Below, piece after piece: positions 16,720-22,497 of a DNA stretch of 64,000 nucleotides (its first letter is position 1; the number at the start of each line of letters is the position of its first letter). The position numbers were made by a program, and so were the translations under genes. The notes under the pieces are model-generated. The model made no database searches, was not told the origin of the DNA, and saw only the letters and a program-made list of their open reading frames with translations. The stretch comes from Bugula neritina (Eukaryota > Animalia > Bryozoa), in contig OZ037768.1 of NCBI GenBank assembly GCA_964035545.1, positions 18,583,700-18,647,699 of the forward strand, given 5' to 3'.

Positions 16720-19700
16720 CTAATTAATTACAGGTAAGAGATCAATGAAAATTTTCTTGCTCTTTTCATTTACAGAGTAACACAAGTTAAAGTATTGTTT
16801 GGATTGAAATTTTTCTCTCAAAACCCCAGCTACATCTGTTAGCAGATCAACTAGCTCTACTCTCTGTACAGATGGGTGGTGGACAGGAAGGCTGTTCAGG
16901 ATTGATTCTCTAAATTTCTTTATCTCTGTGCCTGTTTGGAGCTTAGAAGCTCTACTGTTGGTGACTCCTGAGAGATGTTCAGAAAAGCATTTGAAAAACA
17001 TTCCAGCTTTCGATCTAAAGAATGTCAAAAGAGAAAAGACTGCATACATTCTAAAAACAGAATTTTCCACTATTTCTAAAATACAGCTCAACTCATAACA
17101 GTTGCTTCAAAAATGTAGTTTCTCACGATACCTGCTGTCTGGTAAGGTTGTGAAGCAGATGTAGCAATCTATTGGTACGTTTAAAGGCCTGAAAGATTGT
17201 CTATCCCATTCTTGAGTTTTAATCGCAGAAGGTAATTGTTTTTGGGCTGGTTTATATTGCAGCTCTATCTCATTCTCAGGCCAAGGGAACTCATCGGTAG
17301 ATTCAAAACTATGAGGAGCTCTGTTGTATATGGCTGAAATATCTCCTCTGCAGCAAGAGAGGAACAGTAGCTAAAATATTTAAGATATTTTTTCAAGTCT
17401 CAGCTAAGTATTATAATTACACTTTAGGTGAACTTAAGAAACAATTGACAAATCACAGATATTTTACGTGGTACCCACAACGATTAAAACGGTTTTGATG
17501 AGAAACGGAATGAATCATAGATATATACTTCAATAAGTGTTTTTTAAACCTAAACAAGTAAAGCTCTTCAACTAAGCTTATACTTTAGGAATATTCCTAA
17601 CATGTCCAGAGTTAAAGTGATTCACTACTTCCTGTACTGGACAGTTAGACTCGCCATCATGTCCATAAATCATTCCATCTTTACCGTGAGAGAAGATAGC
17701 AAGAGCAGCCATTGCACCATGTCCTTCTGATTTAGAGAATTCTGCTATGAAGCTGAGCATTTCATCTGCAGGTACATTGCACTTAACATCAACCTAAAAC
17801 GTTAAAATGGTATGACTGGTAAATTATTATAATAAGTAGCTAAAAGGAACCCACAGCGTTAATTATGCTAAAGTTGCGTTTATACTTTCACAATTTTCAG
17901 TCAGAAATTCAACTTTAAAGTTTTTAGTGCTAATAAATTAAATATAAAACAATGAAAGAAGACAATACACATTTTTCTTCTTTCCATTTTTATTTCATAA
18001 GTAAAATTTTGGGCATAAACACAACTACTTTGTATTTATTACTCACAGCAAATCCAAAGTGGTCAGTTAAGATTTTTTGGGCAGAGGTTAAAGTTTCAGA
18101 CCGTCTTTTAGAGATTGTTATCTCATGTGATGTTGCATTAGAAGATATTTCTAAGTTGTTACAGATTATCAGAGCTCTCCCTCTGTTGTTTTCACTTATG
18201 ACCATTTTGTTCTCCAACGACTTTCTCATTTCACCACCGTCCAATCTACTCGGCTTCTCATCACCAGACTTTCTCTCTTCACCATCAGTAGTTGCTCTCA
18301 ATACACCATCATCTGATGTTATTTCACCAGAATCTGATTTACTTGCTCTACCATTATCTGGTCGATTCTCTTCACAATCATCTGTTGAAACTTCTTCACC
18401 ATAATCTGGTGTACTTGTTTCACTTGCTTCATCTGCCAGACACTCATTCCTATCTCTGATGTATCTCTTGCTCAGAGTTGAGTTTACACTCACTTTCTGA
18501 ACATCAGGATCACAGCTGAACTCATCGATCAGGGAGTGTATTGACTTGTAACGCCATAGCTCTGGTACTGAGTGACTATAAATTTTGGTAAACATTATAA
18601 GCATTCACTGTCCACTATTTTTTGTAAACAAACTATATTATTGGTGTTACCATACACAAATAAAGTTGCCAATGATTTATACAGTATAAATTAATAATGA
18701 CAATTATGAGTGCCAATTAAAAAATTATCTGATGTTTTTCGATAGCTAAATATTAAGTGGTACCTTCTTTTGCTTTCTGCCGTGTTATACTGTACAGAGA
18801 GCATCAGGTAGTCAGGTCCAGGTGGTACTAGGTTCAAATCTGCTTCTTTTTCAAAACTTTGTATCACTGCTATCTGACAAATATAATAACATATATTTAT
18901 AAATTTCCATATACTATATATGTTTGTAAAAAGAATTTTAAAAACAAAAAAAATGTTTATTTTGTACCTTAGGCTTTCCATTGTATAAAGGCAAGTCCAT
19001 ATCATTTAGTTGGTTCTGTATAGACACCTGTTTAGGTTCTTCCACAATGTCTGTGTTCATGACAACAAGCAGGTGATCTTCTGCTCCAATTGTTGTCTGG
19101 TAAAGCAATATTATTTAAAGTGAATTAGAGTAGCTTTGATCTTTTGTTTATTAAACTCTGTTTTGTCAAATAAAATTTAGAATTTTCTTGAAACAAAACA
19201 GTTTAGGAACTGGTTTAATTGCTAAATACACTCGAAGCTATTATAAACAACTGAATGGTCTTTAGTTAAACTTTTTATCAAATGTAGTTATATTAATAAG
19301 ACATTCTGCACCTAATGTTTTCTTTAGAAAAATAATTTGTTTACAAATAGAAGAATACTAACCATGTAATGCAAAACATACATGATATACTGTAATACCA
19401 TAATAATATAACAACATGCTGCAATTAAATATGGAAAGATCATAATGTATTTTATAAACATTAATGACATTCCACAACTTACTATGTCGCCAAACTTTCC
19501 ATTTGTTGGAAAAGACAAGCTAGCTGATTTCTGTCGATTAGCAACTGAAGGGTGTGAAATGGGTGACAGTAGACGGGCGGAGTCAAGCAGTGAATATTCA
19601 TTTAACAAGTATTTTAGCACTCTGAGAATAGTGTCAGTATATTGGTAATATCTTTCAGGTAATGAAAGTTGTAGCGGAAATTCTACGCCAGTAAGCATTT

Positions 19701-21840
19701 CTATTATTTTGTATTTAGATTTCAAGCTCAAGTTTGTGTAATCACCGAGCACCTTCTGGATATAGTACATCTCATGAAATCCTTTTCTATGGATTATCTG
19801 TCCACAATCAACCATTTGTGTGTTTGGTGACTTCTCAATGCTTTGTCTTGCTGACAAAGGAAGATGTAGCATAAAGTCAGCAAATACTTTGGTGTTGTAC
19901 TTGGCAGCAACATAGTGAAGTGGTGTGTTACCGTATACATCCGGATACATCATGTCTATTATGCTCATATAATGTAAATAATCTTGCAGCAATTCGTAAA
20001 GCTCTTTCTGAGATGGAGACAAGGCCATAAGGTGCAAAATGTTCTGGCGATATTTGTTATGCTTTTGTAAGTGAAGGCGCATTGTATTTAAGTCAGATAT
20101 ATCTGCTACCTGCTCAAGAAGCTCATCTAGGGCATTAAATTTTCCAAACCTGATCAGTGAGAGAATGGGAGTATTGCCCTCCTTATCTTCACAAGTGATT
20201 AGTTTCTTCACACTTTGGCCATGAAGCTGTGAAGTGAGAAGAATTTCCACAACTTTCTTGTTATAAGCAATGTGCAACGCTGTTAGGCCATTCTTGTCTT
20301 GTAAATAAATCAGGTCATCATTTTCTGAAAACAATTTACACAGATATTCTACAATACCAGTCCTACCTTCAGCAGCTGATACATGCAATGCCGTGAATCC
20401 ATTGTTATCGGTGGACAACAAATATTCTTTCTGTCGGTGTGGCCTAACTGATTCCACAAGTACTTTTGCAATCCCTTTCTTACTAGCAAAGTGCAGCGCT
20501 TTCCAACCATTGCTCGCTTTCATCTGTACAAGTTTATCATCTCTTGGATATAAACTACAGAGATACTCAACTATGTCAGCTTTACCATAAGCTGCTGCCA
20601 TATGTAAAGCTGTACAATCATTCTCATTAACGGAAAACACCAAATTTTTTTGACTGTTGGCATCTACAGACTCGACAAGTAGCTTTGCTATTTCCCGATT
20701 AATTGCTACGTGTAAAGGAGTTGAACCTTCTGAATCCTTCATCAGTAAAAATTCACTGTCACCGGGATACAGACTACACAAGTATTCTACTATACCTGCT
20801 CTCCCAGCTGCAGCTGCTCTATACAGGGCTGTGCACTGATTATTGTCAACAGATTTTACAAACTCACTTCGCTTATCTGGTGCAACAGATTCCACGAGCA
20901 GTTCTGCTATTTTTCTATTTGTTGCAGAATGTAGAGCTGTGCAGCCATCACTGTTTTTTGTAGCTGCTAGGTTATTGTAGGTTGGAAGTAAACTGAGAAG
21001 ATATTTTACTACATCAACTTTATCTAACGCAACTGCAGTATGTAATGCTGTAAATTGGAGAGATGTGACAAATGAAATTGAATCGATTTGTCTTTCTGGT
21101 GATACCGACTCTATAAGTAGCTTTGCTATGGCTTCGGTTTTGGCATAATGTAGAGCTGTACTGCCATCACTATTTTGTTTTAGTATTAGCTCATCATTTG
21201 GTAAATACAAACTGCAGAGATAGTCTACTACATCTGTTCTACCCATTGCGGCAGGCTCATGCAGCGCTGTACACTGATACTTGTCAGCAGACAGAACCAA
21301 GTCTTTCTGCCTATCTGTTGTTACTGACTCTACAAGTAGTTTTGCTATTTCACGGTTACTAGCATAATGTAGAGCTGTTTTACCAACCTTATTTTTCTTT
21401 AATATCAGTTCATCATTATTTGAACATAAACTGCAGAAATATTCAACCAAATCAGTTTCCTTTGTGTCACTAGCTAAATGTAATGCTGTACATAGATATT
21501 TATCAGCTGATAGAATGTATTCCATTCGTCTTTCTGGTGTGACTGACTCTACAAGTAGCTTTGCTATTTCTTTAGTCTTCGCATAATGTAGAGCTGTTTT
21601 GCCACACGAGTCACTTTTTAGTATCAATCCATCGTCAACTGAATCTAAGCTGCATAGATATTTCACCACGCCAGTTCTATCATGGCTAGCTGCTACATGT
21701 AATGCTGTACAGCCTTCCTTGTCAACACGATCTAGATATTCTCTTCTCTCCTCTGGTTTAACTGACTCTATAAGTAGCATTGCTGCTTCCTTATTTTCAG
21801 CATTATGTAGATCACTACCAAAACCTGTCCTGCTATTCAT
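16720..21840 (-). CDS. Ankyrin-repeat/caspase (peptidase C14) fusion protein, ~1289 aa. Exons 21840-19483, 19096-18968, 18873-18764, 18575-18047, 17793-17584, 17370-17132, 17014-16720
   Basis: Seven GT-AG, phase-compatible exons give a 3870-nt uninterrupted frame. N-terminus has ~17 ankyrin repeats (TALH/TPLH). C-terminus has the caspase motifs in order: NRGRALIICN, HFGFAV, AIFSHG, IPKLLFLSCCRG, VPIDCYICFTTLPD, GMFFKCF, ELVDLLTDV. Confidence 0.88.
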
Positions 21841-22497
21841 ATTGGAGACAAAACTAGCATTCACTTAGCATGACTTACAGCTGAAACGAATTATATACAC
21901 ATGCGTAGCTATGACTCTACACTGGCTAGTTTATTTCCTTATACAACATAATATACAGAGGCTGTAGATGGCTTGATGTCAGGGCTGAAGAGCCACTACA
22001 ATTGCAACAATAAGAATGCCCTATTTGCTTTATCTCAAACAACCTGTTCAATTATATTATGCAAATATTGGCTTTCAGAGATGAGCTGTGTAAATATCTT
22101 GTTCTATTTAAGCTTAAAAAGTTCAGCTAGCAAAAATACTTGTCTATTAATCATAGAGGGTACTGGTGTAAAAAGAAGCTAAAAAAAAAACTGCAAAGAG
22201 AGTAGCTAGTATTTATGGTGTTGAAGAAAATATGCACATACCTATTTTTATTATTGCAACATAGATAATTGAGATACATTTAGATAGCATAAAATTCTAC
22301 TAAAATTTGTCAACCATTTAACATAAGCTGGTGCAGTTCTACAGCAAACATTTTGGAAAATCATTAGATTCAACCTGTCACACTGTTTATAGCCTGTGAT
22401 AAATTGACTAGTTGATGTGAAGGGGAGTAAGCTTTCTACTCAAACCAATAAATAAGCAGAGGCTATAAAACTGGCAAAGTTCCTGAATAATGGACTG

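Follow-up and report, generated by a model that had tools for sequence, protein, structure and literature searches.

We describe here a gene in a 64-kb stretch of the Bugula neritina genome (C4:18,583,700-18,647,699; hereafter the window, over the whole of which all positions are numbered). It encodes a cytosolic protein of 1,289 amino acids (aa) in which 14 regular and about three degenerate ankyrin repeats are followed by a helical tail, a module that is probably a dead caspase, an acidic spacer and a divergent caspase domain. This gene of a bugulid bryozoan is intact, and in another colony its ortholog yields transcripts that are spliced alike. At least 17 genes of the genome make up the family to which it belongs, and Watersipora has this family as well. 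The explanation that we favor overall, with a probability of roughly 0.6, is that of an intact ankyrin-caspase family gene in which the array acts as the pro-domain for proximity activation. The bryozoan family, with its putative dead module and its long arrays, is undescribed in the literature searched, whereas the ankyrin-caspase layout as such is already known, as a little-studied kind, from flatworms.

Gene structure and transcript evidence

The window is AT-rich eukaryotic DNA (G+C ~31%) and holds only two open reading frames (ORFs) of more than 170 aa. These are an 846-aa ankyrin ORF (19324-21864) and a 204-aa ORF (17990-18604), each read from the minus strand. A preliminary description of this locus had proposed that seven phase-compatible exons yield one protein of ~1289 aa, and a direct re-reading of the sequence returned the same model. 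The gene runs on the minus strand from 21840 to 16720, its seven exons (E1 to E7) add up to 3,867 nucleotides (nt) or 1,289 codons, and all introns are of the GT..AG type with compatible phases (0, 0, 2, 0, 0, 2). E1 (19483-21840, 786 codons) is a single ORF with the start ATG, the ankyrin array, the degenerate repeats and the helical tail. E2 (18968-19096, 43 codons) and E3 (18764-18873, 110 nt) encode the first and continuing parts of the putative dead module, and E4 (18047-18575, 529 nt) is one open frame that comprises the end of this module (18575-~18440), the acidic Asp-rich spacer (~18439-18200) and the start of the p20 subunit (~18199-18047; NRGRALIICNN...SKRRSETL...HFGFA). The p20 core lies in E5 (17584-17793, 70 codons), while E6 (17132-17370, 239 nt) carries the catalytic Cys, the intersubunit region and strand 5 (DCYICFTTLPDS), and E7 (16720-17014) carries p10 (SKAGMFFKCF...VELVDLLTDVAG...), its coding part (17014-16723) ending at a TAG stop (16722-16720).

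The reading frame is closed by an in-frame TAA (21867-21865) just upstream of the start ATG at 21840. The first residues (MNSRTGFGSDLHNAENKEAAMLLIESV...) are conserved at the beginnings of two paralog ORFs, P0004 and P0026, so that nothing precedes the array in the protein, neither a signal peptide nor an additional domain.

Transcript evidence came from contigs of two sequencing runs, both labelled metagenomic RNA-Seq and both made from the same "symbiont metagenome" sample; these contigs are ~96% identical to the window and represent another colony or lineage. A single RNA contig of 2,722 nt runs from 21917 through the ankyrin exon (21917-19484), jumps 19484|19097, 18968|18873 and 18764|18575, and ends inside E4. 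RNA contig sequence reaches down to 18335 in this exon, and another contig covers 18362-18180. Over introns 1 and 3 the RNA depth is about zero. The introns are precisely removed, and the contigs therefore derive from RNA. One gene and one chain, as originally claimed, are thus what the transcripts indicate where they cover the junctions: the ankyrin exon is read through E2 and E3 into E4 in one contig, and a second contig joins 17132|17014 (E6-E7). For the E5/E6 joint, the only trace is an RNA contig in which 26 letters between 17606 and 17366 do not match, as many as the 22 + 4 nt expected of a spliced junction.

The predicted joint between E4 and E5 is supported by homology. It rebuilds the motif FGFA|VDVKCNV, to be compared with the canonical strand LGFxVxxxxDL, and the same boundary is found in at least 14 paralogs and in the NCBI model P0013. 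An independent DNA contig (L026, from a Joint Genome Institute metagenome, ~95% identical) has no indel columns over 1,103 nt of exon vs 51 gap columns over ~775 nt of intron, and its E4 is free of indels.

These data bear directly on the possibility that the fusion is an artefact of the gene model, with adjacent ankyrin and caspase genes expressed separately or the caspase part transcribed from an internal promoter. The E4/E5 junction is absent among the RNA-contig rows listed, no spliced database protein bridging E4 and E5 was found, and the public models P0005 (B. neritina) and P0032 (Watersipora) annotate the caspase part only. However, the RNA contig that leads from the ankyrin exon via E2 and E3 ends in an exon whose single frame includes the first p20 strand, there is no separate start for the caspase part at p20, and the same arrangement in order and strand is found at 17 loci as well as in Watersipora. 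In addition, the N-terminus of P0005 is identical to the end of P0004, an ankyrin ORF of 1,013 aa, so that this public model must be truncated. We consider such an artefact extremely improbable. An arrangement of two separate genes was rejected on the strength of the RNA contig into E4 together with the recurrence at the 17 loci and in Watersipora.

Two features outside the protein were noted along the way. The 5' leader (21871-21837), where the RNA contig follows the genome without a break as far as 21917, contains two tiny upstream ORFs, the first (atgctaagtgaatgctag) at 21871-21854 and the second starting at 21860 and overlapping the main ATG at 21840. Intron 4 contains a very high-copy repeat (17868-17912) at which many loose contig ends accumulate; contig depth in the bin 17853-18031 is 7,382 and 1,046 in the two RNA-labelled sets (X1 and X2) and 20,823 in a DNA set (X3), vs ~130 nearby in X3.

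A family of ankyrin-caspase genes in bryozoans

The preliminary description had called for a count of paralogs. In the 216-Mb genome, the tail of E1 is matched at 18 places, E5 at 18 and E6 at 19, and at least 17 loci share the same layout, namely a tail ORF with caspase exons on the same strand 2-7 kb further downstream. Nine of the 17 lie at C8:7.33-7.58 Mb. The ankyrin ORFs of the paralogs range from 609 to 3,025 aa, with 35 repeat anchors in an ORF of 1,603 aa and 58 in one of 2,453 aa. The catalytic motifs are retained, SHG at all 18 recovered caspase-exon loci and xCRG at all 17 whose E6 alignment reaches the motif; the Arg of the S.RR..L motif is kept at most of the 14 loci with a recovered E4 part. 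A few matches depart from the common layout, comprising one tail-like match with no caspase exon nearby and two caspase-exon sets with no tail match (C2:8268809-8269213; C1:66189-66413; C1:29660962-29661177).

The family is also present in Watersipora subatra (OY755159.1; L019, 6536-9324), where the annotated 263-aa caspase XP_067930803 (P0032) is directly preceded by an ankyrin ORF of 721 aa that lacks annotation and carries the same tail and module. When 1.84 billion representatives were searched exhaustively with HMMER, only 135 matches were returned, mostly exon-sized fragments. Both RefSeq XP_067930803 and GenBank EB796_014620 keep the caspase end only and leave the upstream ankyrin ORF unannotated. 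Public bryozoan gene models thus truncate these genes, and surveys of caspase architecture that rely on such models miss the family because the models are cut short.

Every part of the gene is under purifying selection in the one duplicate pair compared. In this recent pair (C8:8.69 and 8.70 Mb), the ratio of nonsynonymous to synonymous substitution rates (dN/dS) was estimated separately for the array (0.28), the tail (0.19) and the caspase exons (0.17). The alternative that the gene is inactive or decaying was considered and rejected.

Beyond this family, the genome contains at least 177 exon-level matches to PF00656, many of them clustered on C1 (32.8-35.5 Mb) and C6, a caspase complement that is very large for a genome of 216 Mb. 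Together with purifying selection on the whole gene, this complement could be taken to suggest a developmental or housekeeping protease, with the array anchoring the caspase to a cytoskeletal or membrane scaffold for tissue turnover such as cyclic polypide regression, and with no sensing involved. Classical ankyrins are scaffold adaptors, and bryozoan polypides degenerate recurrently, both of which would fit such a role. A housekeeping role nevertheless leaves at least 17 paralogs with very different array lengths unexplained, and we regard it as improbable.

The C-terminal caspase domain

The window exons were searched singly, and the evidence on fold and phylogeny was obtained with the natural paralog proteins P0005, P0013 and P0032 as proxies. 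Taken one by one, the short caspase exons gave no match in Pfam, being too short; with scores of 52.9 bits for P0005 and 45.5 bits for P0013, two paralogs exceed the gathering threshold of PF00656 (21.4 bits). E5, which recurs at 18 genome loci, on its own matches CED-3 at E = 7.8e-5, followed by caspase-2, -3, -6 and -7, with SHG aligned. Sequence searches of the PDB with E4 alone and E7 alone returned nothing meaningful, and the p20 part of P0013 matches CED-3 at 8e-10. The caspase exons of the window align end to end, at 30-63% identity, with two B. neritina proteins that carry PF00656. In BLASTP comparisons, E4 matches P0013 at 6e-25 with both of its ends covered, and E6 and E7 match P0005 at 3e-36 and 1e-32, respectively, E7 being also aligned with the canonical p10 helices.

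An AlphaFold2 (AF2) model of P0005:372-632 (pLDDT 70.6, pTM 0.70), a segment 49-73% identical to E5 to E7 of the window gene in the caspase alignment, matches caspases only, with a best value of 1.2e-5 and alignments of up to 275 columns that reach the C-terminus. By this proxy, a complete p20 + p10 caspase fold is predicted for the window gene, the first strands in E4 aligning to P0013, and the p10 part is modelled as a caspase small subunit with a family-specific insertion. A complete caspase at the C-terminus, as first described, is accordingly borne out by motifs in the window itself and, for the fold, by the paralog model.

The two catalytic codons lie exactly where they had been placed. 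The predicted catalytic His (codon 17688-17686) is part of AIFSHG, aligned to the SHG of CED-3 and caspase-2, and the predicted catalytic Cys (codon 17352-17350) is part of LSCCRGD, aligned to QACRG, so that the pentapeptide reads SCCRG rather than QACxG. As for the S1 pocket (in caspase-1 numbering), the equivalent of Arg179 is kept (SKRRSETL) and the position of Gln283 is occupied by Ser. As read from these alignments, the caspase is divergent and its predicted catalytic dyad is intact.

A probable dead caspase module and an acidic spacer

Between the repeats and the protease, the preliminary description had placed a linker of ~300 aa. The region is present, but it does not appear to be a plain linker. 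A model of P0005:100-380 built from a 38-row family alignment, with the window exons as separate rows (pLDDT 64), begins with a helical tail. An alpha/beta module follows, to which E2, E3 and the first part of E4 correspond in the window, and an acidic Asp-rich stretch comes last. In the paralogs, the acidic stretch carries repeated EERETD(G/D) units, and this spacer is probably disordered.

Several comparisons point to a caspase-like identity for the alpha/beta module. Nearly all of its best 50 Foldseek matches are caspases (E only 0.03-0.3), and VIA gives Z = 5.4 to the protease-like domain of cFLIP and 5.0 to Sf-caspase-1, tied with the DegV and EIIA folds. By hhalign, the family motif SVQNxLNxMDLPxYNGKPKIAVIQS is placed onto helix 3/strand 4 of canonical caspases (P = 0.0029) and onto those of the family's own caspase (P = 0.0036) in the same register; the corresponding motif of E2 (SIQNQLNDMDLPLYNGKPK) aligns with the canonical EI..LFN..CP.L..KPK. 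A profile search of the PDB found caspase-1 at E = 0.5 on the same SVQN...VIQS segment. The module continues in E3 (IAVIQSFEKE...DYLMLSVQY) according to the family alignment and to the fold and language-model matches of P0005:236-375 to caspases. In the ESM Atlas, 29 of 30 feature matches to the module belong to PF00656 and the structure reaches a TM-score of 0.67 to caspase-7-like models; the Atlas shape search with the linker model returned generic Rossmann-like rows only. The module has Thr at the position of the catalytic His and Phe at that of the catalytic Cys. We therefore consider it probable, with somewhat better than even confidence, that this is a dead, partial caspase module from which both catalytic residues are missing.

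The ankyrin array

Pfam detects only ankyrin families in E1 (Ank_2 at E = 1.2e-70 with 12 stretches; Ank at 3.3e-61). The regular array (20176-21732) consists of seven pairs of alternating A (37 aa) and B (36 aa) repeats, that is, 14 repeats, with 14 TALH anchors at a spacing of 36-37 aa. About three degenerate repeats follow, giving the ~17 repeats counted in the preliminary description, and lead into the helical tail (the two together at 19483-20175), which bears the family-specific motif VLKYxLNEYSLLD. This stretch matches its 18 places in the genome at 28-100% identity, as well as the B. neritina caspase models P0005 and P0013, and in the AF2 model of the tail region of a paralog (residues 100-240) it is helical, with modest confidence.

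No death fold had been noticed at this locus, and none was detected here: Pfam reports no family of the CARD, DED or Death domain type, with cut-offs of E <= 1 for each of the exons and E <= 0.001 for the paralogs, and the conserved N-terminus starts directly with the array. This negative is limited at the helical tail, which is modelled with modest confidence only and barely covered by the structure searches.

The variable positions of the array cluster before the TALH motif and just after its His, where ankyrin proteins usually contact their targets. Within the array of the duplicate pair at C8:8.69/8.70 Mb, dN/dS is 0.66 at putative binding-face positions vs 0.20 in the framework (one pair, with position classes chosen by the analyst). 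Such a pattern, along with the spread of array length among paralogs (~14 to ~60+ repeats) and the tandem clusters on C8, could reflect a direct one-component sensor of non-self, in which each array would bind a ligand of pathogen, symbiont or allogeneic origin, this binding would suffice to turn on the caspase, and the family would form an innate-immune or allorecognition repertoire. However, dN/dS stays below 1 in the one pair measured, and ankyrin arrays bind host proteins just as often. A dedicated non-self sensor is thus possible, although we think it unlikely.

Proposed mechanism of activation

Initiator caspases are the textbook case of activation through death-fold adaptors. Under the reading that we favor, the ankyrin array would fill the role that CARD or DED pro-domains have in ordinary initiator caspases, docking the zymogen onto protein partners or ligands and so raising its local concentration. 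Alternatively at this step, the array might hold the dead module against the live caspase until binding relieves the inhibitory contact. The caspase domains would then dimerise and cleave themselves in the Asp-rich spacer and in the intersubunit region, and the freed p20/p10 protease could start cell death or another proteolytic response with no need for death-fold adaptors. The preliminary description suggested direct ligand binding by the array as the trigger of the protease, a reading that is plausible as a hypothesis.

Several points count against this picture. Proximity activation and autoprocessing in the spacer are carried over by analogy from how other caspases work. The evidence for the fold was obtained with paralogs of 50-75% identity. 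In place of the Gln of QACxG, the window gene has Ser and all paralogs have Ser or Cys, and the equivalent of Arg341 is possibly the split-codon Arg of LPDS-R (Arg or Lys in the paralogs), in a stretch where the alignment is unreliable; Asp specificity is therefore not assured. Taken singly, the results that point to a dead module are all weak. At the level of the transcript, besides the E4/E5 joint missing among the RNA-contig rows listed, the contigs of the other lineage lack 1 nt at 20123, a site outside any homopolymer; if real, this deletion would put that allele out of frame between the array and the tail. The DNA contig L026 ends before reaching 20123. The same contigs skip 189 nt of the array at 21475/21665, with two letters between. 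Both the deletion and the skip may alternatively be mis-joins or repeat-driven assembly errors in the array.

A more far-reaching proposal, which we regard as rather doubtful, is that the family represents single-chain immune or allorecognition receptors of a colonial animal. The fast-changing array of 14-60+ repeats would recognise non-self directly and the dead module would serve as the intramolecular partner of the live caspase, like cFLIP with caspase-8, so that one ligand-bound molecule could fire with neither adaptors nor an oligomeric platform.

Under the favored reading of an ankyrin pro-domain caspase, an animal lineage would independently have put ankyrin arrays of great length in the place of the death fold, added a dead caspase module and multiplied this design to at least 17 genes while keeping the catalytic residues. 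The family thus offers a test case for how a caspase is wired to a repeat-type recognition module, for whether sensor-proteases in a single piece, comparable to those of microbial immunity, have evolved in animals, and for the role of the large bryozoan caspase complement (polypide turnover, colony fusion or rejection, symbiont control).

Comparison with known ankyrin-caspases and related systems

"ANK caspases" have been named in parasitic platyhelminths plus one annelid, having been first noted in Schistosoma (Genome Biol Evol 2024, PMC11463336). The authors of that survey, which did not extend to bryozoans, placed them beside DED caspases and proposed an initiator role via ankyrin-mediated protein binding (PMC11463336). 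In the literature that we searched (on bryozoan, cnidarian and domain-architecture topics), no description of an ankyrin-caspase of bryozoans was found.

A search restricted to long caspases recovered flatworm examples from Cichlidogyrus (P0185), Schistosoma japonicum (P0193) and Macrostomum (P0202 and P0203), with few N-terminal ankyrin repeats and a canonical caspase. Those of the free-living Macrostomum lignano (predicted lengths 1,536 aa and 1,099 aa, ankyrin repeats with a C-terminal caspase) contrast with the description of ANK caspases as restricted to parasitic flatworms (PMC11463336); they sit on a very long branch. The flatworm and bryozoan proteins alike lack a death fold: ankyrin repeats form the N-terminal pro-domain instead of CARD or DED, and the caspase is C-terminal. 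In contrast to the flatworm proteins, with their few repeats, canonical caspase domain (PF00656 at E = 1e-25 to 1e-57) and grouping with DED caspases, the bryozoan ones have 14 to ~60+ repeats, the putative dead caspase-like module, the SCCRG motif and at least 17 paralogs.

A tree built from 32 caspase domains unites the bryozoan P0005, P0013 and P0032 in a clade of their own (support 100/98). This clade has a long stem and lies among CARD, DD, DSRM and effector-like caspases, whereas the flatworm ANK caspases group with DED caspases and a jellyfish protein (P0067) stands apart. An approximately unbiased (AU) test rejects a joint clade of the bryozoans with the neodermatan flatworm proteins P0185 and P0193 (p = 0.0081); both results were obtained with partial domains and a long stem, and the tested group was named after the first tree had been seen. 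Tree and test thus place the bryozoan caspase outside the flatworm ANK clade sister to DED caspases. The separate clades and the AU rejection indicate that the ankyrin-caspase design arose more than once, and the phylogeny identifies the bryozoan family as an independent, much enlarged variant that would have arisen separately from the flatworm ANK caspases. The preliminary description had left open whether the architecture was already described: the layout has been named in flatworms, but the bryozoan family is phylogenetically separate from these and is undescribed in the literature searched.

Other animals have also fused recognition modules directly to a caspase in place of the death fold. 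The DSRM caspases of oysters have been read as possible pathogen detectors (PMC7836458), one dsrm-caspase (P0080) being among the sequences recovered here, and annelid caspases carry Z-binding, TIR, kinase or ROC pro-domains (PMC11463336). These are single genes or small groups with small pro-domains, unlike the very long repeat arrays and the large family of the bryozoans. In the jellyfish Sanderia malayensis (EukProt), the 1,127-aa model P0067 contains 4-5 ankyrin repeats and a caspase, twice in tandem, with the motifs DACRE and NACRE, and may represent two neighbouring genes merged by the predictor. It resembles the bryozoan proteins in having ankyrin repeats directly N-terminal to the caspase domain, and differs from them in its canonical caspase domain, short array and separate place in the tree.

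With regard to the putative dead module, the closest parallel is cFLIP-L with caspase-8, in which a dead caspase-fold module is likewise paired with a live one; the protease-like domain of cFLIP is also the best caspase-type structural match of the bryozoan module. The bryozoan dead and live modules would, by contrast, reside in one chain of a true C14 caspase. Separase, which bears no sequence relationship to the bryozoan protein, similarly combines a long helical repeat region, a pseudo-protease domain and an active caspase-fold protease.

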